The position numbers and the translations under genes were made by a program. The notes under the pieces are model-generated. The model was not told the origin of the DNA. It saw only the letters and a list, made by a program, of their open reading frames with translations, and ran no database searches. This document shows, one piece after another, positions 18,789 through 59,720 of a stretch of DNA of 64,000 nucleotides (within the stretch, counting starts at the first letter, position 1; each line of letters begins with the position of its first letter). Source of the DNA: Paragordius varius (Eukaryota; Animalia; Nematomorpha); the NCBI GenBank assembly GCA_964247055.1, contig OZ176051.1, positions 8,742,001-8,806,000 of the forward strand. Direction: 5' to 3'.

Positions 18789-21700
18789 CAGGGGTCGGCA
18801 ACCTAGGACTCGCGAGCCAAAATTTTCACGACGTGTGTTTTTTACATGGCTAGCCAGGGCATTTAGGAAAAATTAAAAATTAAATTTAAATTTAACCGTA
18901 AGCGGGCCGAAACGCGGCTTGTAAACAATGACTACTCTTTTGGTTGAATCATTTGATAAGGAATTTTTTGTATGAAATACATACAATATAACGTTGTTAT
19001 CTAATTTTCAGAAATTGCACGCGCGCGCGTTCGCCCATCTGACGCAACTTCAAAAACTAAAAATTCTTAATTAGTTTTATATCAAAATTGTTATTTATAC
19101 CAATTATTATAATTATCTATTGTTCTCTATTTATTTTCAAAATTTATTCTATCTATCAGTTTTTCTCATTCATTCAAAAAATGCGCGAAATTACCTTTAT
19201 AATATTTTTCATATATTTTATCTATTTATCGTTTTATTTGAATTATTTACATATTCCGAATTAAAATTCTTATTCCTCAGTTGTAAAGATGCGTATTTTA
19301 TTTCATTTTTATTTATTGATATATATTTATATATGTTTTTTTTATTATTATTATTTTTCGGTTAAAATTTTTGATTCTTTTTTAGTTGCATTTACATATT
19401 AGTTACTATATATTTTAGTGTTTATTTTCATCTATATTATTCTTCTAATTTATTGTATTTTTGTGTTTTGTTTTATGAGTGTTTTTTGTAAGATGTGCAG
19501 GCCAGCGGCCAGTCATTGCACGGAGGTAGGGGCCAATAGGGATAAGGAAGGTTGTAGAATGTGTTTTGCCAGTATAAATGTTGGTTCGTTAAAAAGTAAG
19601 TTATATGATTTAGTTGAAACTATGAGGGTAAAAAAAGTAAATTTTGTGCATTCAGGAGACCAGATACCGTGGAAATGGTACTAAGACGTTAGAAGGTAAT
19701 TATAAAATGTTTTATTCAGGTTCTACGGATGGTTACAGTGGGGTCGCCATAATAGTGTGTCCAAGATTTGCCAATCAAGCAATTGAGGTTAGACGTGCTG
19801 ACAGTAGAATTATAAGTGTCGACCTATTGTTAAATAGGAGGGTTTTTACTATCTTTAGCGTTTATGCCCCCCAGATAGGGTTAACTAAACCGGAGAAAGA
19901 TAAATTTTATAAGTTGTTAGACGCAGAAATGACTTTATTAACGAAAGACAGAGAAATTATATTTTGTGGTGATTTTAATGGGCACGTGGGACAAAATAGG
20001 AGAGGATTTGAGCCTTGGCACGGCGGAAAAGGTTACGGGGTTATAAATGAGAAGGGGCTAGTTTATTAAGATTTGCCCAATCTTATAACTTTGCTATAAC
20101 AAATACTTTTTTTACTAAAAGGGATAGCCACTTAATTACCTACGAAAGTGGAAATAAGAAGTCACAAATCGATTATATTCTAGTACCACGAAAGTCTTTA
20201 AAGTTTGTTTTGCACTGCAAAGTGATACCTAATCTGCAGATTAGCACACAACACAATTTAATTATGTGTAAATATATGACAGATATACCAATAAATGCCA
20301 AAAAGCCTAAGCTTATAGCCCCGAAGGTAATTAAATGGGATTCCCTAATAAACAGTAAAGAAAGATTTGTAGAAACGGTAGGCATACTAAACAGGAACAA
20401 GAATCCTGAAAGTGTTTGATCTCAGGTGGCAAACAAATAAGAGAGGCGGGAGTTAAGATGTGCGGAATGAAAGGTGGTAGAAATCAGGTTTATAGAGAGG
20501 CATGGCTGAAGACGAAAAAATAATTCTGACGAGAGAAAAGAAAAGCTTTTAAAATGTGGAGGTTTACCCACCAAGCAGAAGACAAGGAAAAATATAAAAG
20601 GATTAATAGGAACTTAAAAGGCTTGTAAGATTGGTCAAAAAAGAAAAGACGGCATCATTATATGAAGAGTTAAACAGTAGGCAAGGTTTAAACAAAGTTT
20701 ATAAAATTGCTCGACAAAGACACAGAAGAAAGCTGGACTTGCCCCCTTACGCGACAGCTATTAAAGATAAAAACGGCAAATTACTCGTTGAGGAAGCGAA
20801 AATATTGAAAAAGTGGAAAAAATATTTCCAGGACCTTGAATTGGGCGTCAGTGAAACAAGTTTACCCGAAACACCAGATTATATATATGCGCATATTGAA
20901 AGTATAACAAAAGAAGAAGTCCAGGCTGGTTTAGAAGAGATGTCAATAAATAAGGCTGCAGATCCAGACGATATCAACATAAACTGTTGGAAAATAATGT
21001 CAGAGAAAGGTATTGAATTTTTGAGGGATATTTTTAATAATGTAGTTACTACAGGCATGATACCAACCGAATGAAAGGAGAGTTTCACTGTTCCCATTTT
21101 CAAGGGTAAAGGAGATATTAATTGTAATAATTACAGAGGGATAAGATTGATGTCGCATACAATGAAGTTATTTGAGAAAGTACTAGAGAAAAGAATAAGA
21201 AAAATGGTTTTTATAGAGGGTAATCAATTTGGTTTTATTCCAGGAAAATCCACCATTGATCCGATTCACGCAGTAAGAAGGCTAATCGAGAAGCATATAG
21301 AAATGAAAAAGGAGTTGCATGGTATTTGTATTGATATTAAAAAGGCATTTTACAGAATACCTCGGAACACAATATGGTGGAGCTTAAGACGGAAAAAGGT
21401 CCCTGAAAGTTACATAAAGATTCTAAAAAGCATGTACGAATCACACCAAACCAAAATTAAAACACACCAGGGAATACAGGTCCTATTAAAATAAACGAAG
21501 GGGTCTATCAGAGGTCTGCAATCAGCCCGTTACTATTTATAATATGCATAGACGAAATTTCAAAAGAAGTGGGGCAATATGGTGGCTGGTATTTTCTTTA
21601 TGCAGACGACCTAATAGTGCTGTCCGACGAGTTGCATCAATTAAAAGAATTGGTAAATGGATTGATGTGTTACGACGATGCGGATTAAAAGTTAATAAAA

Positions 21701-33650: not shown

Positions 33651-35354
33651 TTAAGGGAATTTGTGTTTAAGAAAAGATCGTAAATGTTTATCAAAACAAA
33701 TGAAGAGTATAAAACCCCAGGCGGAATTAAGTATCTCCAGGAAATTGCTTACTGTTACCAGATCTCTGAAGAGACATGTGTTTGGCAAGCAAATAAAAAA
33801 TTCGTAGCTTATGGCCGTTATGGACATGGGAATGCAAAGCATGATATAAAAAAACATTAGGAGAAATAGAATGTTTGAGGCTGAGTCTTTTGTTATCGTT
33901 GACTGTTGCAATAAATTTTTTTTATCATTCCTTAAGTTATCTAATCTTCTGTCACTTTCTTTTTTACAAGCTTTAATTGTATTTTGTAGATGATTATTGG
34001 ATTCATACGGTTGGTTCGCACTTTTAACATCGGGCATTGATGGAAATTTAAAATCGTCGTTAATTTTAACTTTCAAAGTTTGTTGTAAAGATTTTTTTGG
34101 AGACACTAATTTTATTTGTTTATACAAAAGAGATCTGCGTTTACGAAGGTATTGCATATAGTTATAACATGTTTTACCATTCACAATGATAATAAATACT
34201 ATTGGTAAGATATTAATAATTATTTCTCGGATGTTTTCATAAATCTTAAAGGATTGGGTTTTACGAAATTCCATCATTTTATAGCGTATAATAATTGAGT
34301 CGTTTAAATTTGTTGCACTTTTATTGGATTCATAGTACTTATTATCGTTTAATGATCTCTCATTTCCATTACTATTTTTGCTATTGCTGGAAAACTTTGG
34401 ATCTTTAGTAAAGTATAACTGGCCAATTAGGTACCAACGAAATATGGGTATTTGCCAAGCCAAGCAGAACATAAAACTTAAAAAGATACTTATTACAATA
34501 TGTTTTTTAGTGAATAAGCTACTATAGAGTAGAGGTTTGCATATAGCTACGTAACGCTCTATCGAATATATCAGGACAATGAATGTCGCCGTTTTATTCA
34601 GGGTTGTGCGCATAGGAAAACACCAATTTGTCATGAACACCCAATACGATCTGTCATAAAAGTAGCCTGGCTCTTCGTGCGATAAATATATAAAGGGTGG
34701 ATGTTCTTGTTTATACTCAGTTTTATCTAAATCATTAGCATCCTCACTAAGAGACACCATTGTTCCAGTCATCGTTCTAACATAATTCCCATAATAAAGG
34801 AGAAATGGCCAAGGGACATTTAGGATGCAGATCATGAGATATAAAATTAACATACTAATGACATACAAGTAATAATTGCTCATGGTTTGTTGAGCCTTGG
34901 GTTTTGCTACATTACTTGTGTGGTGACCTTCATCCATATTGACTGCTTTATTCGATTTAGCTGATTGATCACATTCGTTAATTTTCTTAAAATTATTATT
35001 ATCCTGATATATGGTATCCTCCTCGACGTTATACATTGTAATTGAGGTTTGGCAAGTCGATTTTTGGAAAAATTTTGGCCGATATAATAATTTTATCACA
35101 TTAGTAAAGTATATTTTTTTCGTTGTAACTTTAGGAGGTGTATCAGATAAGGTTGGTGGTTGGGTGCTTTTATTATTTTTTTTCCTCAAATTTCTTTTGT
35201 ACGACCATATTAGACATAAAGTTAACCCATTTCCAACCATGCCAATGATTGAAATTATGGGTGTTATAACTACGTACAGAACGAATTCCGTCCTATTTAT
35301 AAGAATTAAATTGGTAGCATTTGATAGCGAATAATAATCAAACACCGTACTCAT
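33651..35354 (-). CDS. Class A (rhodopsin-like) peptide-type GPCR, FMRFamide-receptor / B0563.6-like; intronless, 567 aa
   Basis: Seven hydrophobic segments; TM1 IIGMVGN; TM3 SIERYVAICKPL; TM6 LCIP; TM7 NFLEILNSAWGFILF; N-terminal sequons NAT and NRT; long loop insertions. Confidence 0.92.
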   Translation of the reverse strand: MSTVFDYYSLSNATNLILINRTEFVLYVVITPIISIIGMVGNGLTLCLIWSYKRNLRKKNNKSTQPPTLSDTPPKVTTKKIYFTNVIKLLYRPKFFQKSTCQTSITMYNVEEDTIYQDNNNFKKINECDQSAKSNKAVNMDEGHHTSNVAKPKAQQTMSNYYLYVISMLILYLMICILNVPWPFLLYYGNYVRTMTGTMVSLSEDANDLDKTEYKQEHPPFIYLSHEEPGYFYDRSYWVFMTNWCFPMRTTLNKTATFIVLIYSIERYVAICKPLLYSSLFTKKHIVISIFLSFMFCLAWQIPIFRWYLIGQLYFTKDPKFSSNSKNSNGNERSLNDNKYYESNKSATNLNDSIIIRYKMMEFRKTQSFKIYENIREIIINILPIVFIIIVNGKTCYNYMQYLRKRRSLLYKQIKLVSPKKSLQQTLKVKINDDFKFPSMPDVKSANQPYESNNHLQNTIKACKKESDRRLDNLRNDKKNLLQQSTITKDSASNILFLLMFFYIMLCIPMSITAISYEFFICLPNTCLFRDLVTVSNFLEILNSAWGFILFICFDKHLRSFLKHKFP

Positions 35355-42823: not shown

Positions 42824-43996
42824 ATGGGGGAAATGGACTCTAAACCAGAATTGTATCGTAAATATAGTAATTATCAATCCCTTTGTGCAAAAACCGTTCT
42901 AAATGCCATGTGGAGTTTAGAAAATGACTTAAATTATTGGAATCCAGATAATAAGGATACAGAAAACAACTTTCATTTTGGGAAAAATATCCGTATATTA
43001 GATGTTGGATGTGGATACGGGTCCACAACTAAATTTATTTATGAAACAATGATGGGAAAAATCACACAATTAATCTCGGAGAGAAAATCCAAAATTGAAC
43101 TTAATGAAAATGACTTGGGTGACAAATGCCTGATTCAAATAATTGGAATGGATCTTAATTCTGATATGATAAAATATGCATCGAAGTTAAACACGATTAA
43201 CACTGAAGACGCATCTAAATCAATAGGTATTGATATACCCAATATAAATGGAAATGTTAAGAAGAAAATAAATTTTCAACTTTCTTACATTACCGGTAAT
43301 ATTGAACAATTCGAAACTATTACTTTTGAGGGTAATAAAACGGCTTTAATGGATATTATATTCAGTTTTAACTGCATACATTGGATACCTGATCTCACGT
43401 TAGCCTTTAAAAACATGAGGCGATTGTTAAAGACTAAAACAGGCATTTTAAGATGTGTTTTTCTTGGAGAGCCCATTCAGTCTTTAAGTTTTGCCACACA
43501 GAAAACCATAAATTATTTTTGTGAAACATCTAAAAGCATCAGTGCAAGTGCAATTAATGAGTGGTTGATAAATAGAGGAATTGTTTTTAATGAAAAAGAC
43601 ACTTCTATAAATCATAATAAAACAATAAATGATTTTTTTGAATTTTTATGTCAGTTAAAACGCATTTGGGATTCAGGAAATATTCCATGGTGCCGATCTT
43701 ATTCGAATGCTGATTGCCCGGTTAACACACTGAAAAATATATTATTAGAAGCAGAATTTACACAAGTAAATATAACACCATTACAAAATTTAAGGTGGTT
43801 TTGTTTACCATCAGAAACTTATTTACATGCTACTCATCAAGCAATTTTCCCAAATCTCACCAAAATCGGAAACATTAGTCTTCAAAATGAATTTTTATCT
43901 TTATTTAACACGTTTTGTCATCAATACAATGAAAGATTTCACGGGGATGTCTGTAATCAGCTTGCATGCGAGTATTATATCGAAGCATATGCATAA
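42824..43996 (+). CDS. Class I SAM-dependent methyltransferase, juvenile hormone acid O-methyltransferase (JHAMT)-like; intronless, 390 aa
   Basis: Motif I ILDVGCGYG; IIGMDLNSDMIKYA; DIIFSFNCIHWIPD; N-terminal ELYRKYSNYQ resembling JHAMT LYxxSNxLQ. Confidence 0.88.
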   Translation: MGEMDSKPELYRKYSNYQSLCAKTVLNAMWSLENDLNYWNPDNKDTENNFHFGKNIRILDVGCGYGSTTKFIYETMMGKITQLISERKSKIELNENDLGDKCLIQIIGMDLNSDMIKYASKLNTINTEDASKSIGIDIPNINGNVKKKINFQLSYITGNIEQFETITFEGNKTALMDIIFSFNCIHWIPDLTLAFKNMRRLLKTKTGILRCVFLGEPIQSLSFATQKTINYFCETSKSISASAINEWLINRGIVFNEKDTSINHNKTINDFFEFLCQLKRIWDSGNIPWCRSYSNADCPVNTLKNILLEAEFTQVNITPLQNLRWFCLPSETYLHATHQAIFPNLTKIGNISLQNEFLSLFNTFCHQYNERFHGDVCNQLACEYYIEAYA

Positions 43997-44864: not shown

Positions 44865-47782
44865 CTATGAAGTTGCCATGTTCAGGATTGCGGCTTATCT
44901 AATATACCGTTACAGCGTTTAGTATTAGTCCAGGTGAATCAATTAAACTGGAAAAATACTAGTAGAATTTAAAAAAGTAAATATCTATAACGATAAGATA
45001 TAATTTTGGAAATATTTAAAATAATCAAGTCAACCACAGGGAGTGTGTATATCAAAATATCATTTTTACTACCTTTTTGAAAGCATGGATGTTACATGTC
45101 TCTGGTTCAGTCCAAAAACTACAATAGAATATAACAACAATCCATCAAATGATTCATTTTTACTAAAATACACACATCAACCAGCAAGTGGGATTTAATT
45201 TAGTTATATTGTCAAACAATTATCAATATGGCATTTTTCTCAGGACATTTTAATAACCGCTCATAATCAGTTTTACCCAATAAAACGGTAAAAGAACCAA
45301 TCGCCGCTCCAAATCAAACTTCTAAAAGCCTTTTAAAGACAAAAGCGATAAAAAGTATAAGGTCTGAGTTAATACAAAAAGCTTTAAAAGTCACTGAAAA
45401 ACCCCCTATCTAGAGATATTGGAAAAGAGTTGAAAATTTTAAGATATATTTCACCTATGTTACTTTGTAAATCAAATCCGTTGACATCAGGGGTTTACTC
45501 CCAAATTTTCATTATGTATTTCAAATTACTGTGTTCTTTTATGGGCTGCATTTCTTATTATCTTTCACTCCTCCAAGTATAAATCATTTACTCTTTTATG
45601 GTACACTTTCCTTCTGCTTTCAAACCCATTTTATGTGGTCTCTAACAAAACCAAAGCATGTGTCTTTAATTACCATCTAATTAGTTATGCAACATTCAAA
45701 TCATCCGGAAGATTAGAAAGTCTAATTCATTCTGGCTATGCCGTCACGGTTATAGTAGGTTGTAAAAAATATAGCCTATAATATCTGAAAAATCAAGATT
45801 ATATATTTTATCAGTCCGGTTTAGGTTTAATGATCAAATTTTCCAACTTTAGGATTTGCACCTCATCAGCTTTCAGTGTCCTAAATTAGGGTTCATGTTA
45901 GATAAAAAGAACCGATAAATTGAGAGAATTCAGCTACAATATCGGTTATAAGGATTTGGTAAAACTTGGTAAATCGTAAGATACTTTACATTTAAGCATG
46001 TTTCACTGAGCCTCGACAAATAAGTAAATTGAATATGCACAATTCAAATTTTCGGTTTAAATATAATTATAACAATCTATATGAGGGTTTTAAAATGTTA
46101 GAATATTAAATAAATCTTTTTTTTCCGGAATCGCTTAACATTTTTAAAAAAACCGTGATTAAGCCATTAGCAATGATAAAGAAATAGAAAATATATTTTT
46201 TGGTGGAATTGACTCACAAATTTGGCATTTATATTTTATAAAGTAACATTACTTTTTAAATAAAAATATTTTGCTCTTATAAACACTTATATTATATCTT
46301 AGCGATAATTACATATTTTAAACATTAGTCGAGGCCAGTATACAGATAATCGTATTTATACAATATGGAAACTTAGTGATATCAGTTAAAACTCCTTAAA
46401 ATTCACATTTTTATAGAATTTAAAATTTAATAAAATTTTATTTTTGACACTTTCCTTTATAAATGATAAACCTTGCAAAACTCAAGCTTATATATATTTT
46501 GATTATTATATATTGATATAGCCATTTTCATAAAAATAAAATATGGACTGCTTATTGGTTAGTTTATTTTTTGTATTAACCGATCGTCAAAATAGATCGA
46601 AATAAGCCACGATAACTAAGCGCTCTAAAAATGATCAATCATAAACTGAGAATCTTTTTTAAAAGATTGTCTATAAAAAATCAAATCTGCACTATGGCAT
46701 TATAACCACTGCTTACAAATAGTTTACCTTATCCAATATGATTTATTAGTATAAATAATTTTAATATTCTATACCTTTCACCTCCGTGCATAGTATTACT
46801 AAAATGTCAAATATTTATTTCGCCTATATAAATAATAATTAAAATAATAATTCAAAAATAAGATAATAAAGAATAAAAGATAATATTTTTTAATTCACAA
46901 AACCGCATACCACTAAGAATTTATAAAAATAACGGTTTTAATTAAACTCAATTAACGTTACATATCATACATAGCTATAGAATAAATTTATAAAAATGAT
47001 AACACATTAATATACTAATCTATATTTTAATATTGGATTTGGAAATGAATTATTTCTTGATTGTATATAAAAATATCTCTATAGATAATCGTCATAAACT
47101 TTTTTGAAGTTACGTGATCTAATTCAGATCTAGGTATAAAAATGCGATTTCAAAAATTTGTCGATTGAAGTAATATTTTTTTCTTCGCTCATAAATAATT
47201 ATATTCTCCGCCTACCTGTACTTATTATTTAAAGAAAGTATAAATTACTAATAATTATTTGCAATTTGATCTTATCTTCTTAAAGAAAAGCAACTTCCAT
47301 CTTTTCCAAATTCATTAATTAATTATGAGGATTCATCAACAAGGTAATTTGCAATCGAAGGATAACATGGGCTCTTTCGCGCATCAAGATACTTTATTAA
47401 ATACTCATAAATTTTTATATATGTCTTAAGAACTACGTATTTACGTAATATTATATAAATGTTTATATTTAGTTTAGTAAAAGTTTAATGCAAATGAGTA
47501 AAATCATTAATGATAAATATTACCCAATTTGTTTTTATCAACTTCTTATTACTATGACAACATTTTGTAGATTACTATATACCTTTTCTTATTATTACTA
47601 CACAATTCTACGTAATGATTTCAATTGCATCTATATAAATTTTAGTTAAAAATAATTAACGCATAAAGTTCAAGATTTTTTGTATAAATAGACCTAATCA
47701 CATACAAAAAATATTTTTATATTTGGTGACGCTTTGATTCCGTTCGATTCGATATTGTCTCATCCGAAATATATTAACGGAT

Positions 47783-50600
47783 ATGTTTAGTTTCATAGAG
47801 GTAATTAATTATACAATTATTTTAACTGTTATTCTATTTATATAGCATGTATGTCATAATTTCCTAAAGACAAGGGGTTGTATTAACATTTTTATTTTTC
47901 GAGCGACGATGTGACCTAGGAAGGCGATGATTTTAAATTTTTTAAACAAATCACTTCAAACATATTAAATGGTAATATGTCAAAAATTTTGATTAATGAT
48001 AACGATCAAAACATAGCTAAGTGATGACAATAGATAAAAAAATTTTAATAACTGTTGTCATTCCTAAATATCCATGCCAGAATTTTTAGGTATTAAAGCA
48101 ACATTTTACTAATTTAAATAAGATATCAAATTTAGATCATACGGTTATTTATCATATCTTTTTATTAAAGTTTATAAGATAATAAGATATGTTTGGGTGT
48201 TTATAATTTAGGTCTAAATTTTATATGGTATAAGTTTGAAAGTTAAATAGTATTGAGAAGGAATAAAGAGTTTGATAAAAAGTTTATATGAAAATTCGCA
48301 TTAAAAATATAGGTTAATTTTAAATATGCTTATACGTTTCAAATATATTTATAGATTATTATTTATTATATATGTTTTCCTATAGAACGGATTTTTTTTC
48401 GTAATGCTGTTGATATTTCAAACACAAGGGCAGATACAGTCCATTTCCTCTCCTCGTGATAATCGCGATCTCAAATTTTATGACAACAGAAATGAAAATC
48501 TTGATTTAGCTAAAGAACAATTGCATGACATAGATGAAGAATTTGGGAATCCCAATATTGAAACATTAAATGATTTTTATCCCCATAAAGCGATGGACAG
48601 GTTTAGGGTTAGATTCTCAGGTTTACCCGCAAAACGAAAATTTCCAACAAACAAAAATCGCTTAAATAGTGCTTGGATTGTACAAGATAACTATTATAAC
48701 GGTATTTATTATACGATTTTTATCAAAGAAATTAATATAATAACAGTAGTTCTAGTATTAGCGGATCCTGCTCCAGAAATCTTGTTTTTAAATATCATGT
48801 ACACATATATAAAATTTTAAAAACAAATCAAGATCATCCGAGACAAGATCTTTTGTTTAAATAAATAATGAGGCCTGTTCAGTTTAGGGATGAATTGCAT
48901 TATAATTCAATGTTACATGTTCATATTATATTAACCAGGAAAATTAAAACAATCTTTTTATGTTTGAATATCTTGGTTTAATCTTTGTTTAAATATTGCA
49001 CATAAATAGGCGACAAAGAGATTCAAAATAAAAAACACTTGACTTAAAAAAATTTAGTAAGAGTTATGGCTTCAAAAAACTTCATTGGGACAAAAAAATC
49101 TCTAATTACACGCTTATTAAATATTGTTCTAAGGTCCAATGTTTCATACTAAAATATTTTGTGTATACAGGTTATAAATTTATCAAATAAATGAGGTGCT
49201 TTTTTAATATTTTATGCATGGACCCAAAATATTTTGACTTTGTGCTATTTTTTTAATTTAAACCCGAAAAGCTACATATATCAGCGGTAGCGAATTATAC
49301 AAAGTGAACATTCTTACATGTGTGATAAATATGATAGAAGCAATAGATTAAAATACCTTTTATAATATTTTTTAAATTTTGATCTATGCAACTAAGCGGT
49401 TTTTTAGCGATATTCATTGGTAAATTTTAGCATTAAATTTATTACGCAGTTTGGATTTTTTTATGTATCTAGACAGTTTTAAAAAAAATTAAGTGTACTC
49501 ATATTTCACGAAATTATATTGGCTATTGAGCATATTTTTATTATATAATTATTACATGCTTTAATTGGTCTAAAATTGTTTTTCATATTTGTGCTTCAGT
49601 GTAATTATGATGTTTTATTAAAAAGCAAAAAATGTGATTTTTTAAAACTCCACTTACCTCCTAATTCACGGCTCTCAACAATATATCGATAGACTCGTTT
49701 TTCCAATTTAGGAGTTTATTAGGTAAAATTACCGTATATTTCCTTTGCTAAACTGTTATATTATAATATCCTATTTATCAAAACTGAAATACAGATGGCC
49801 ATGTTATTTTTATAATATAAACTTTTAAATACCATCTTCACAAATATGCCATTAACTGCCGAAATCTTATATTTTTATGATCCACCAATTTTATGTTAAT
49901 TTCTCTCTACAGCAAATATAATATTATTGATAAAGAAGAAGTTATAAATATTTTTTTAAACTGTGGTCGTCACGATTTTGAGCATCCATAACCGATCAGA
50001 AATCTTTCCTATTCCAATTAATTATTTATATATACAAACTTTATGTTTAGATGAACACCCAAGTCTCAGTTCCAAAACAAACATTATTTGGTTAAAGTCA
50101 AAAAAAGGGCCCTCTTTCTCAATGTCTCGGTTATTCCCATATTATGAACGGAAGCGACCTCTAAATTATGGCAAATCATACTATAATTCAAATCTCTTGT
50201 TTAGACAAGTATATATAAATACTTAATGTGACTATTGTTAATGGGTTTACTCCAATAAAATAAAATCCATTTTTTCCGGAAAGGTTTTGAAACCAAAAAA
50301 AAATCCAAAAAATGTTTAGTTTTCACTTTTTGCTGCTATTAACAAAAATAACGCTTTGCTCAAAAATCTATCTGGCAATATTTACTGAAAAATAGGAATG
50401 TGTATTTACTCATACTGTATCATTAGGGCATACATAAAAGAAATGGGCAACTAGATGGCAATGTAAAGCCAATTACGAATCCCCATTTTTTGGTTCGACC
50501 AGCTGGAGGTGGTAAGCGCGACGCATATGAATTAATTAAGAGTGTATTGCTCCCGAAATCTGTGTTGGATAGCATCGTGGATGAAATTTTATCGGAATAA
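47783..50600 (+). CDS. Neuropeptide / peptide-hormone precursor-like protein, 221 aa (exons 47783-47800, 48386-48701, 50051-50208, 50427-50600)
   Basis: All junctions GT-AG and in frame (phases 0, 1, 0; 666 nt including stop). Signal peptide MFSFIENGFFFVMLLIFQTQG, acidic pro-region, KR / RKR / KR sites and an amidation-type GKR. Confidence 0.75.
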
Positions 50601-51015
50601 GATCTCAAACATTTATTCGTTATAAATTTGTTTATCGTTTGCACTGATTTTTAAAACACTTTAAATAAAATACCATAGATATCACTAATTATTTCTATCG
50701 TACATTCATTATATATTTGTAGATAATTGTGTTGCACCACACACACACACATTACATTTATATCCGTAAATGAATAAATTTTTCAATTAATAATTAACGT
50801 TAAATTATATTTTCAGTTTGTTTGTTTGTTTAACACTTCATGACCTTTTAACTTTTTTATCCGCAATGACACATTGGGGTAGTTTTATAACCCAAAGCTT
50901 AATCTTGTAAATAAAGTACTGTTTTGAAAGTTATTTTAGTTAAAATAGTATCAAACATTGGCCTGTGTTAGAAAAATCTTATATTTTTTACAGTTTTGTA
51001 ATCTAGAATCTAGAG

Positions 51016-53112
51016 CAGTAGTACTCAAACCGCGGCCCCGGGCCGCATGCGGCCCTAAGAGAGCCTTAAAATTGCCCTATGACCATATTGATACTTAAAT
51101 TTTTTTTATTGATGAATTTTTAAAAAACACATAAACTAATTTTAGCTTATTTTAATTAATTTATTTTCTTGGGTTTTAATTTTGGTAATTTTTATTACCC
51201 AATTTGAAATGTAGATAAAATTCCGTATAAAATGATTCTATAATTTTTGGCACACGTTGTTTCTGTTTCTGTATTCTATTTAATATTCTATTTTGAAATT
51301 TTTATTGCATTCCTTTTTTGTATTTAAGCAAGCCTTTTACCCAAACTATAAATATTCTTTTCATTGCTATCCTTCATCATTTTTTATAATTCATTCACAT
51401 AAAATATTTTTCAAGTCATTATCATTAAATTTCGACCTGTTTTTTTAGAGCATAATTCAAATTATATTCCTATTTTTTGAAAAAACAATATTTAAACATA
51501 AATTTCAAAGGAAATTTAATGCTAAAAACGTAAATTATCCTATGAAAATTGCTCCTTTAAAAAAGAATGGGAAGAAAAATTCTTTGTTGTTTTAAATAAA
51601 AATGTTGGTACCTCCCTTATATGTTAGGATAACATAATTATAAAAAAATACAATATCGAAAGACATCTTAATGTGCGCTCTTCGCGAGATTTTGCCGACA
51701 ACATAATCAACAATGAATAATTAAAATTTTTACCAATGAATAATACCACGAAAGGAAGTGATTTTATCGAACTAATTAGCATTTAGTTCGATAAAATGGT
51801 ATATCTATGAAAAATTGGTTTTGATCTTCACAGATGGCTGTCTTTCTATGATTGTAATAAACAAAAGATTTATTCCTCTTTTAAAAACAAATATAATTTG
51901 CAAAGTATTTTATCCTTTTCACTGCTTTTTCATCAACAAAACTTGGTTTCTCGTGAAAATGAATTACTCAATTTAGTAATTAAAACGGTTGGGGATATAG
52001 TTAACCACATCTTGGTGGAGAATTCAGCCGCCTAAATTCAAAAATTTTCTGAAAGATATCCGCAGTGTTGATGATATTCTTTTGTACACCGCTGTGAGAT
52101 GGCTAAGCCTTAGCAAAGTATTAAATAGTTTTTGGTTTTAAGACATGAAATTCTAATATTTATAAAAGATAACAGAAAGTTTGACGAGGAAATCAATAGT
52201 GAATGGTGGGTTTAATACCAACTTTTGCGACATTCCTTATAAACTTAGTATTTTTTATACAAGTCTTCAAGGGAGCAAAATAATAACCCAATTTTCAAAT
52301 CAAATATTTGGTTTTGAAGAAAAATTAATAATATATAAACAAAATTGTATAAATACGCCACTCCTATTTTTCCAACACTTAAAACCATTCATGAAGAAAG
52401 TATAGAATTTATCGCGTAAATTAGTTTAATAATAATAACAAATTTGACATTTTTATGTAATGATATGAAATTCAAATTTCAAAAATTAAGATAGATAAAA
52501 AATTGGTTAAAACTCGTTGAAAATCCATGGCATATGGATATATCCAATATTAAGCAACTTGAGCATTTCGGTTTTGATCAGGCACATATCATTGAAGAAT
52601 TCGTAGATTTGAAAAATGATTCCAATTTTGCAGGCTATATTTAAGGAGAATCTTAGAGAAGAAAGATATGTAGAGTTTTGGCAAGATGTGCCAAATAAAT
52701 ATGAAAATATAAAAAAATGTGGTTGTCCTAACTGTTTTTCCCACACGTGTGAGACGGCATATTTAAAAATGAAGTATGTCAATTCATACAGAAATCGCTT
52801 AACCGATAATCATATGGACGACGTATTAAGATTGGCCTGTCATGAGGCGAAGACGAAATCAAATTTGTCAATAATTTTTGGTTATAATCAAAATAACGGT
52901 TGTTATCAAAATATTATAATTTTTTAAATTAAATGGTGCAAAACGAGTTTTTTAGCTGGATTTTTATGCGATCCGCAGAAAATTCATTATGCTGATTAAG
53001 ACTATAAATATGTGCACATGTGTCAAATAGCTAATGAATATTTGCCATTATAAGGTTCATGGCCCTCGAAAAAATATATTTTATTTGGCCCGTCAAATTT
53101 TTTTGGTGAGTA
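51016..53112 (+). mobile_element. Decayed SPIN/GTF2IRD2-type hAT transposon
   Basis: Left TIR CAGTAGTACTCAAACCGCGGCCC after ATCTAGAG. Fragments EWEEKFFV...KKYNIERH, LLYTAVRWLSLSKVL, and ORF 52616-52927 (EFWQDVPNKY...HTCETAYLKMK...RNRLTDNHM). Right end approximate. Confidence 0.85.
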
Positions 53113-53946: not shown

Positions 53947-55203
53947 CACTGTGTGCAAAAAAATTTTTAACGAAAAAATTTTTTTTTCATGAGATAGCTT
54001 ATGACCAGCGTATTCATTTGCCGCAAAAATTTTTATTTGTTGACAACCTAGTTTTTGAAATATTGAGAGAAAATCGAAATCGGGCAAAAAGTGAAAATTA
54101 AGGATAATTAGGGATAATTTAAAAAATAATGAAAAAATCTGAAATATTATCGTTTATTATCATTTTAGGAGATATATAAATAGCCTAAATTCATATGGTT
54201 TGGGTTTCTATAAAATTTCAGGTCAAAGATGGCGTTTTTCTTATATCACACTTAAAAGACAAAAAAAATTTAATAAATCTAAATTAAAATATTTTTTTTT
54301 TAATTATTTACTACTTAAACTCACTATTAAAATCTTAACATTAATATTTTATTCAGGAAAATAAACTTCTATATCAAAATAAAACCAAAAATACTGTTTT
54401 TTATTTTAGCATTTTTTTCTATGGTTTATCAGTGTATAAAAAATTTATACTGTTTTAATGTGGATTCTTAAATGAGTGGGAAATATTTAGTATATAATTT
54501 ATGCAAAATAGGATTGAAAATTAGTGAAATATCAACCAACAATCCGTACGAATCCCAATACAAATATTAATTTGTCAAAAAACAGACTTGTTACAGGAAA
54601 TTGTAAGGATTGTTGGTTGATGTTCCACTACTTTTAAAACCTATAAGTATACTTAATAATGCTTCATGTAAGAATCAAAAATAAAACAGTATAAATTTTT
54701 TATATACTCACAAACAGATGACAAAAAAATGCAAAAATAAAAAAAACGATATTTTTGGTTTTATTGTGATTTAGAAGTTAATTTTAATAAATAAAATATG
54801 AATGTTAAGATTTTAATACTAAGTTTAGGTAGTAAATAATTAAAAAAAATTATTTTAATATAGTTTTATTAAATTTCTTTTTGTCTTGTAAGTGTGATAA
54901 AAGAAAAACGCCATCTTTTGATCTGAAATTTTATAGAAACCCTAACTATATGATTTTAGGCTATTTATATATTAAAATACCCCAAATGATAATAAACGAT
55001 AATATTTCAGATTTTATCATTATTTTTTAAATTATCCCTAATTATCCTTAATTTTCACTTTTTGGCCGATTTCGATTTTCTCTCTTTCAAAAACTAGGTT
55101 GTCAACAAATCAAAATTTTTGCGGCAAATTAATACGCTGGTCATAAGCTATCTCATGAACAAAATTTTTTTCGTTAAATCAAAATTACCCTCTTTACACA
55201 GTG
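53947..55203. mobile_element. Near-palindromic foldback MITE with Tc1/mariner-like ends
   Basis: CACTGTGT...ACACAGTG|TA. The ~600-bp arms are reverse complements along their length (e.g. TCAACCAACAATCC 54532-54545 vs GGATTGTTGGTTGA 54607-54620); loop about 50 bp. Confidence 0.88.
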
Positions 55204-57086: not shown

Positions 57087-59720
57087 TTGCCTCTTCAATT
57101 GTTCAAACATTTAGGGAATTTGAATATAAGGATTGGGACATGGAACCTTAGAGATGCTAACAATAATAGTAGAATTGACATAGTAATAATAAATATGATA
57201 AAACACAACATCGATATACTCGGTGTGAATGAATCTCATATCCCTTTTAATGGCATTTTAATATTCGTAAATCACGTACTATTTTATTCCGGCCACAGCA
57301 TTATCAAATACAATGGTACAGGTATTATAATGAGTAAGAAATTAGCAAAATTATTTTACATCTATAATCCTATTAACGAAAGCATGATATCAATGCGTAT
57401 CCAAACTACACCTCAACCTATAAAAATCTTCTAAATCTACGTTTCAAACAATTCATACAGCGACGACAACTCTAAAACGTTTTACAATGAGCTAGAAGCA
57501 TAAAGCAAGCTTCGAAAAAAATTCTGTTTCTGGGATAATAATAATATAGGGAGGAAAACACATACCCTGCTACAGAAGACAAAGGATTGGGAACAAACTA
57601 TGAAGACAATATCATCGAATTTTTCCAAAATCATAATTTATAACAACCTTCATTCAACAACCCAAAAGACGCCTCATGGCGTTCCCCGTGCCAAAAATAC
57701 CGTAATCAGATTGATTTTATAATTGATATGAATAAATATAAAAGCTCATTCCAAAACCCTAAATGTCATCCTGCCTCTGACTGCTACAGTAACAACCTTT
57801 TAGTTACTAAACTGTGCAAGCTCTCCGATACCCAATAAGCCAGAAACATTTAGTAAAACACTAGAATAATACTATCGGTAATTTTAGCATCACATTACAT
57901 AATCGCTTTGATAATCTTGACAACCCAAAAAATTGTCAAAACATAGAAAGTACATAAAATTTTATTCACAAAATCTGCAAAAATACAGCCGATGAATTTA
58001 TATATTCTTAGAAACCATCCAAAAATAAAATTAAACTATCAGCAAATAGTCTTGATACAGCTGAAAAACGCAGATTAGCAAAAGTCAAAGGGTTGTGTAA
58101 ATACACAATTTTAAACACCATTTTCAAAACAGCATAATGACGGATAAAACATAATTGTGTGAAAAGCTAGAAACCGACGCCAAAAACAATCAAAACTTTT
58201 GCCCAAACAAATAGGATAAAACAAAACAAACATTATAATTACCGCGGCCGCATGAGAAACGCTGATAATTATCTTGTCACGGATAAGGCCAAAATCTTAA
58301 AAATTAGGCACGATCACATAAACCTCTACGAAACGAAAACCATTAAAATTTATAATGAAAGCACCCAGGAAAAAGATCATCCTTTGCTAAAAGAAGAAGT
58401 GGAATGGGCTTTAAAATATTAAGCCATAGGAAAAGTGCGCACATCGATATACCTTCTGAAATCATAAACCAATCCCGCTAGATATTCTTCACGATTTTTT
58501 TCGAAACTTTTACTCGGATGAGGAGAGGGGTAAATTTATATTATTATCTATTCTGCAAAAAGGAAATCCCGAAATATGTAACAATTATATAACAATATTT
58601 TTAACAAATCAAATGCCTAAAATCTTAAAATCATTTAAAAAGCCTTCAATCTATGTTAACCAGAAATATCACTTTTTCGGGCTGGTTTCCAAAAAGGGCG
58701 AGGATGTAGAGCTATGATAGCCAATATGAGTGGACAATGGACACAGAGAATTCAATACATATGTGCTTTGTGGATTTTTCCATAGCTTTTGATTCCATCC
58801 AACATAATCATTTACTTTCATTCTTAAAACAACTAGGAGTTTCAACTCATTTAATTGTAATATTCAATATAGTTAAGTTCGACTGCTATGGTTTTCATAA
58901 ATCATGGAGTAACTGATCCCTGCATGGTGAATGTGAGGTTACGTCAGGGCTGCAACTTATCGTCTATTTTTTTAATCCATATCTCAAATGCATAATGAGA
59001 AACTTATTCGATACATTCGGGGTCCAGGTGGGAGGCGATCTACTCTATTCACTATGCAGACGATACGGTCATATTCTCAGACACTCATTGGCCTCATACT
59101 ACAACATTTTGTAGATCTCTCAAAAATATGGCTTGAAGATTAATTAAAGACAAAGATAAAACAAATTAACCCGAAAGGCCGGGAATTCTATTAAAACAAT
59201 CAAAAGTTACACATACGGGAGCTTAATACGTGACGATAACAATTGTCTTCACCAGATAAAACGGGGGATAGCTCTAGCCAAAACGGAATAATTATAACTT
59301 AATTTGGGCACCCATGATGTCAGCTTAAAATGCAATTTGACTCACAAATGTAATTTTTTCCAACTTTAATCCGAACGGATAATAACCTTCTTTGAACTAT
59401 GGGGAGAGGAAAACTCCTGCAAATAAAATGGACGGATAAAATATCTAACGCTTTAAATAAAATCAATCCGATATGTCATTGCTTGGAATGTCCTTCGGCA
59501 CCAAACTACTACTTTGGTCACATTATGAGATCTAACTCACTGAAAAAAAATTTTGATGTTGGGAAAAGTTTGTGGCACACGTAAAAGGGGCCGAAGAAGG
59601 ATAAGGTTGATGGACAATATTCTAAACCAATGTAACCTTGGCAGAACTCAACATTAAAACCAAAAATCGCAAGAAGTTTTATTTAGAATATTGAAAAAGT
59701 CGACCTCGACTGTATCAATA
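57087..59720 (+). mobile_element. Heavily decayed RTE-BovB-like LINE
   Basis: APE IRIGTWNLR...NIDILGVNE...YNPINESMISMRIQ; RT-region KGNPEICNNY, AGFQKGRG, MCFVDFSIAFDSI, RQGC, YADDTV; C-terminal YFGHIMR. Confidence 0.88.

Follow-up and report, generated by a model that had tools for sequence, protein, structure and literature searches.

The window analysed here is a 64-kb stretch of the Paragordius varius genome (contig OZ176051.1; GC content ~26–27%, equal to the 26.93% of the hairworm Gordionus montsenyensis, 10.1101/2023.06.26.546503), and on its forward strand, at 47783–50600, lies a candidate four-exon gene predicted to encode a small secreted precursor. This four-exon model, first proposed in an earlier note on the same DNA, was reproduced: the joined exons amount to 666 nt and translate into 221 amino acids followed by a stop codon, with no internal stops. 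The coding part of exon 1 (47783–47800, 18 nt) specifies six amino acids and ends at the donor GAG/gtaatt; exon 2 (48386–48701, 316 nt) carries the hydrophobic core of the signal peptide, an acidic spacer and the first KR (48632–48637); exon 3 (50051–50208, 158 nt) carries the end of the second fragment, an RKR (50149–50157) and the 17 N-terminal residues of an unamidated 20-mer; and the coding part of exon 4 (50427–50600, 174 nt) carries a KR (50436–50441), a 23-mer, a GKR, a C-terminal tail and the stop. The three GT-AG introns of the model measure 585, 1349 and 218 nt with phases 0, 1 and 0; all run from GTA to TAG, and all three donors read GTA[AT][AT]T. The modelled plus-strand frame is the sole stop-free frame across exons 2–4.

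An alternative legal first exon, also of six amino acids, is present at 47045–47062 on the plus strand, with a weaker donor and AT-rich sequence upstream. We preferred the exon at 47783 because its donor is the better one and because a leader of raised GC precedes it, along with a TATA-like box (47683) and a CRE half-site (TGACG, 47727); the last two fall in a candidate core promoter (47683–47731, plus strand) recognized by consensus match only, and the leader lies downstream of them, ahead of exon 1. With an alternative acceptor at 50000, legal and in frame, exon 3 would be longer by 17 residues, and a polyadenylation-like AATAAA (50664–50669, plus strand) follows 64 nt past the stop. No paralogue of the gene was found within the window, and Rfam and tRNA scans gave no matches.

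In order, the precursor comprises a hydrophobic start, an acidic spacer, KR, a 54-amino-acid basic fragment, RKR, the 20-mer, KR, the 23-mer, GKR and a tail of 26 amino acids, with no cysteine in its 221 residues. By a hydropathy rule only, the N-terminus qualifies as a signal peptide, with a short hydrophobic core of nine residues, and there is no other membrane segment. Its dibasic sites for convertases and its Gly-dibasic signal for amidation are features of the prohormone class. The 20-mer between RKR and KR is split by intron 3 and has no amidation signal. Translation of the joined exons placed the 23-mer at 50442–50510 (plus strand), as the earlier note had it; the predicted amidated peptide ends in PAGG-amide (calculated MH+ 2400.29), and each of its two internal basic residues precedes a Pro. 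The Gly-Lys-Arg amidation and cleavage signal (50511–50519, plus strand; G at 50511, KR at 50514) overlaps a donor-like GTAAGC at 50512. The unamidated C-terminal peptide (50520–50597, plus strand; calculated MH+ 2888.58) is weakly PDF-like; an AlphaFold model of exon 4 alone, of modest confidence, gave a tail of two short amphipathic helices and an unstructured 23-mer.

About 4 kb upstream of the gene, an intronless ORF (42824–43996, plus strand) encodes a 390-amino-acid SAM methyltransferase for which the PDB yielded only juvenile hormone acid methyltransferases, at a weak E of ~2e-4 over 47 residues. Further upstream, on the minus strand (33651–35354), a single ORF encodes a 567-amino-acid rhodopsin-type GPCR with long loop insertions and a weak 7tm_1 match; it had no relative in a word-index protein library and only faint matches in the PDB, and it may possibly be a peptide receptor. 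A very high-copy short repeat lies past the gene at 50870–50980, where the summed contig depth in run X3 reaches thousands by comparison with ~80 over the gene. The segment directly downstream of the gene (51015–53100), with a GC-rich end and broken ORFs, resembles a decayed hAT/Charlie-type DNA transposon; Pfam returned no match for the ORF at 52616 within it. A 1.2-kb fold-back element with nested inverted arms that are 76–98% complementary (53974–55171) is probably a MITE or foldback transposon, and broken LINE-type retroelements with endonuclease and reverse transcriptase domains occur at 19400–21500 and 57087–57434, the match at 57087 being faint.

The KR..GKR motif by itself proves little, as it occurred at rates ranging from 23% (strict form) to 0.8 per shuffled window. 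In a joint null, exon 4 was held fixed, the upstream 3.5 kb was replaced and signal-bearing models of at least 200 amino acids were scored. Such a model arose in none of 150 block shuffles, none of 150 Markov sequences and three of 116 real grafts (0–3%). In background sequence, the probabilities of stop-free stretches as long as those seen here (105, 52 and 57 codons) are ~0.0003, 0.02 and 0.01, respectively. Exons 2, 3 and 4 have GC contents of 0.34, 0.35 and 0.41 against a background of 0.265, which rank in the top 5%, top 8% and top 0.5%, respectively. A score of codon usage, for which the few long ORFs in the window served as the training set, had no discriminating power.

No RNA run is recorded as covering the locus, and no spliced reads or contigs were seen there in the runs consulted, of which three were DNA (introns covered) and one, presumed to be RNA, was empty and so is no proof of absence. 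Run X3 carries a second haplotype, in which the coding changes among those listed are E6W, Q24H, D39G, L45F and three silent changes, with no stops. Polymorphism in exon 2 is only mildly synonymous (three of the six codons listed), and one exon 2 contig in this run is shorter by a net three letters while intron 1 contigs have 12 and 16 gap letters, a pattern that fits a kept frame weakly. The E6W change stems from two adjacent substitutions (47798–47799) that replace Glu by Trp in the final codon of exon 1; these abut the donor, leave its GT intact and render the start of the signal peptide less acidic. Neither X3 nor X5 shows any change in exon 4, but its flanks are almost as uniform; variation in exons 3–4 is uninformative, as the whole surrounding block is low in variation. 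In X5 and X6, which are labelled as two other organisms, 47500–51000 is nearly unchanged at a depth of 2–6, as expected if the worm were inside a sequenced host or environmental sample.

Homology searches were performed with one exon each; the joined protein was translated only, and neither searched nor folded. When exon 4 was compared by phmmer with 1.84 billion representatives, the single match was P0001, and no true relative emerged; P0001 is a thrombospondin-repeat protein in which a 16-amino-acid tandem repeat sums many 2–3 bit matches, and it was rejected as chance. Exons 2 and 4 had no match in the word-index library, which sees only proteins of 0.55–1.75 times the query length; no relative was matched among metagenome contigs; Pfam returned no family for any piece of the precursor; and no PDB sequence, peptides included, matched at an E of 10. 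Short words of the precursor were absent from the literature text, and in the part of the file set of a large precursor supplement that was covered they gave only unrelated matches. The blank searches likely reflect poor lineage sampling as much as novelty, given that the GPCR ORF nearby also lacks a word-index relative. The Atlas returned nothing for exon 4. For exon 2 its top cluster was the chordate secreted protein Frey (0.91), and the nearest named clusters were DH31, PDH, NPFF, NPF, urotensin 2B, PBAN and CCK precursors (0.86–0.89). As a lead, these scores would place exon 2 at class level among peptide-hormone precursors, the families themselves being in disagreement.

We consider that the locus is the worm's own neuropeptide or peptide-hormone precursor gene, single-copy in the window, whose 23-mer would act on a GPCR of the same worm with the tail as a companion, and we give this a probability of roughly 0.7. 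In support of it are the in-frame GT-AG model, the joint null, the GC peaks over exons 2–4, the AATAAA and the Atlas class of exon 2. The prohormone gene is probably real and fits no assignable family, and that family may be either lineage-specific or diverged past recognition. The earlier reading of the sequence as a prohormone is well supported by the anatomy, the null tests and the class signal of exon 2, while expression, splicing, amidation and a conservation focused on the peptide are still predictions.

Prohormones are cleaved at KR and RKR sites by PC1/PC2-type convertases; carboxypeptidase E then trims away the basic residues, and the Gly-dependent amide is made by PAM. In the proposed mechanism, the signal peptide would direct the precursor into the secretory path, where such convertases would cut at its KR and RKR sites, carboxypeptidase E would remove the basic residues and PAM would convert the last Gly to an amide; the amidated 23-mer, the unamidated 20-mer and the helical 26-amino-acid tail would then be released, and the Pro after both internal basic residues would shield the 23-mer from further cleavage. 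Neurons or endocrine cells would express the gene. Of its products, the amidated 23-mer would most likely be the ligand of one worm GPCR, and the tail would most likely serve as a companion peptide or in sorting.

The tail after GKR, which the earlier note passed over, carries the only notable family resemblance of the precursor, a weak one to PDF. In a comparison with published PDFs, made by eye and on position classes, it resembles the PDF/PDH/cerebrin peptides in being the last peptide, set after KR, and in having a Glu followed by a hydrophobic face at i, i+1, i+4 and i+5; its LP is shared with insect and tardigrade PDFs and its LD..D motif is also PDF-like. By eye, a gap-free comparison with Caenorhabditis elegans PDF-2 shows five identities (E4, L10, L16, D17 and D21), and there is likeness to insect PDF at about half of the positions. 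These features suggest an alternative, in our view unlikely, that the gene is a degenerate second PDF gene of the pdf-II type. The tail would then be a PDF-derived peptide that is no longer amidated, the 23-mer would be its drifted partner in a tandem like that of nematode pdf-1, and the action would be through a worm PDF receptor on locomotion or arousal. The predicted helicity of the tail is consistent with this, as are the tandem peptide-GKR-peptide layout shared with nematode pdf-1 and the ancestry of two pdf genes in Ecdysozoa (PMC7235175). The Glu-plus-helix pattern occurred in 0.6% of shuffles, and tighter patterns were rarer, although the patterns were chosen after the match had been seen and these values are inflated. 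Against it, the tail lacks the two Asn residues that all seven PDFs compared have in common, and it stops without a Gly or amide at 26 amino acids, four more than the longest of the amidated PDFs (18–22 amino acids); the strict PDF core (an N-[AS]-E start with an Asn three residues past the Glu) is absent from tail and 23-mer alike. Pigment_DH was not among any Pfam results, and an amphipathic helix after GKR-DA is found in AKH precursors too.

A wrong model or a dead gene is improbable, whether as a chance chain of open frames, as a pseudogene or through splicing at 50512 that removes the amidation site. The three real grafts that yielded models of at least 200 amino acids, the segregating two-base change that adjoins the exon 1 donor and the lack of spliced reads at the locus would agree with such a reading; on the other side stand three long exons that are compatible, free of stops and raised in GC, the class signal of exon 2 in the Atlas and variation in X3 that keeps the frame. 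GTAAGC is a textbook donor, and the earlier note had named its use at 50512 as an event that would overturn the amidated peptide. No exon-like target was found downstream, where the frames reached through acceptors are all short, AT-rich or derived from transposons, and GTRAG occurs at ~0.7 per kb inside the long ORFs of the window.

Hairworms drive their hosts to a timed, light-guided entry into water (PMC12316591), and a real precursor might instead be released into the arthropod host by cells of the glands or body wall, its peptides acting on host receptors. The partial likeness of the tail to insect PDF points in that direction, but no arthropod-like sequence was found in the protein libraries, and thus nothing points to transfer or to close mimicry; together with the native intron-containing structure of the gene and the fact that most prohormones act in their owner, this makes the idea very unlikely. 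A more specific form, in which the tail or the amidated peptide of a hairworm-specific prohormone acts on the PDF (clock/locomotion) receptor of the insect host and so contributes to night-time, light-guided water entry, we regard as hardly credible.

For an endogenous precursor gene, as we prefer to read the locus, the lack of a family is a common situation, such precursors being routine in fast-evolving, thinly sampled phyla. The neuropeptide set of hairworms is almost undescribed; among the matches listed for literature on neuropeptides and Nematomorpha there was no phylum-wide survey, and hairworm neuropeptide data have been called for (PMC11658156). The gene alone opens no new mechanism. 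Once verified, the amidated peptide would be a ready ligand with which to deorphanise the worm's divergent GPCRs and a data point on what was inherited by nematodes and by the phylum sister to them. Should the tail prove to be a degenerate pdf-II product, the two-pdf model of Ecdysozoa would extend to Nematomorpha.

The earlier note could assign the 23-mer to no known family, and the same result was obtained in every test run, be it libraries, Pfam, PDB, literature or family features. The RP..GKR-DA junction presumably resembles that between mammalian GnRH1 and its associated peptide, for which the literature search gave no confirmation; GKRDA is common in unrelated precursors. The 23-mer presumably also resembles neuromedin U and PrRP, whose defining C-termini it lacks; having no C-terminal RF-amide, it does not belong with NPF, sNPF or PrRP.

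With the iPTH/PXXXamide/QSGamide peptides it shares a Pro at –4 from the amide and a GKR followed by a C-terminal extension. This Pro is only mildly conserved in the iPTH/PXXXamide family, which is defined by an N-terminal SDQR.AE motif (PMC7224569); the 23-mer has neither this motif nor G.[IV]DP, and it is not the first peptide past the signal peptide. GnRH/AKH and the nematode RPamides have in common with it an Arg-Pro near the amidated end and a GKR-DA that leads into a helical companion peptide. These families require a pyroglutamate start or a terminal RP-amide (PMC7303124). There is no pyroglutamate start adjoining the signal peptide, no [FW]-[ST]-X2-W and no G[FW]xPG, which excludes GnRH/AKH/corazonin; the RP is not terminal, and the 23-mer does not match the set of terminal RP-amide, Ala3 and Gly5-Arg6 that marks the nematode RPamides (NLP-2/22/23/46).

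DH31/calcitonin precursors are similar in their succession of signal peptide, acidic spacer, KR and long amidated peptide and in a C-terminal AGG, and the closest precursor clusters to exon 2 in the Atlas are those of DH31. Drosophila DH31 has 31 residues and a Pro-amide end (PMC3414713); the peptide here has 23 residues, a Gly-amide, no predicted helical middle and extra peptides upstream, and the N-terminal Cys ring of calcitonin is excluded by the cysteine-free precursor. A brachiopod proenkephalin-related peptide shares the single stretch VRPAG with the 23-mer (PMC8557429 supplement), but the precursor has no Tyr-Gly-start repeats and no Cys-rich N-terminal domain. With so many families matching equally weakly, none of these likenesses appears diagnostic. 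The NPLP1-like precursors differ in that no sequence motif is shared, the L-A-R core included; in architecture, the precursor resembles them and many nematode NLPs, in which several unlike peptides, some of them amidated, lie between dibasic sites in a sequence free of cysteine.
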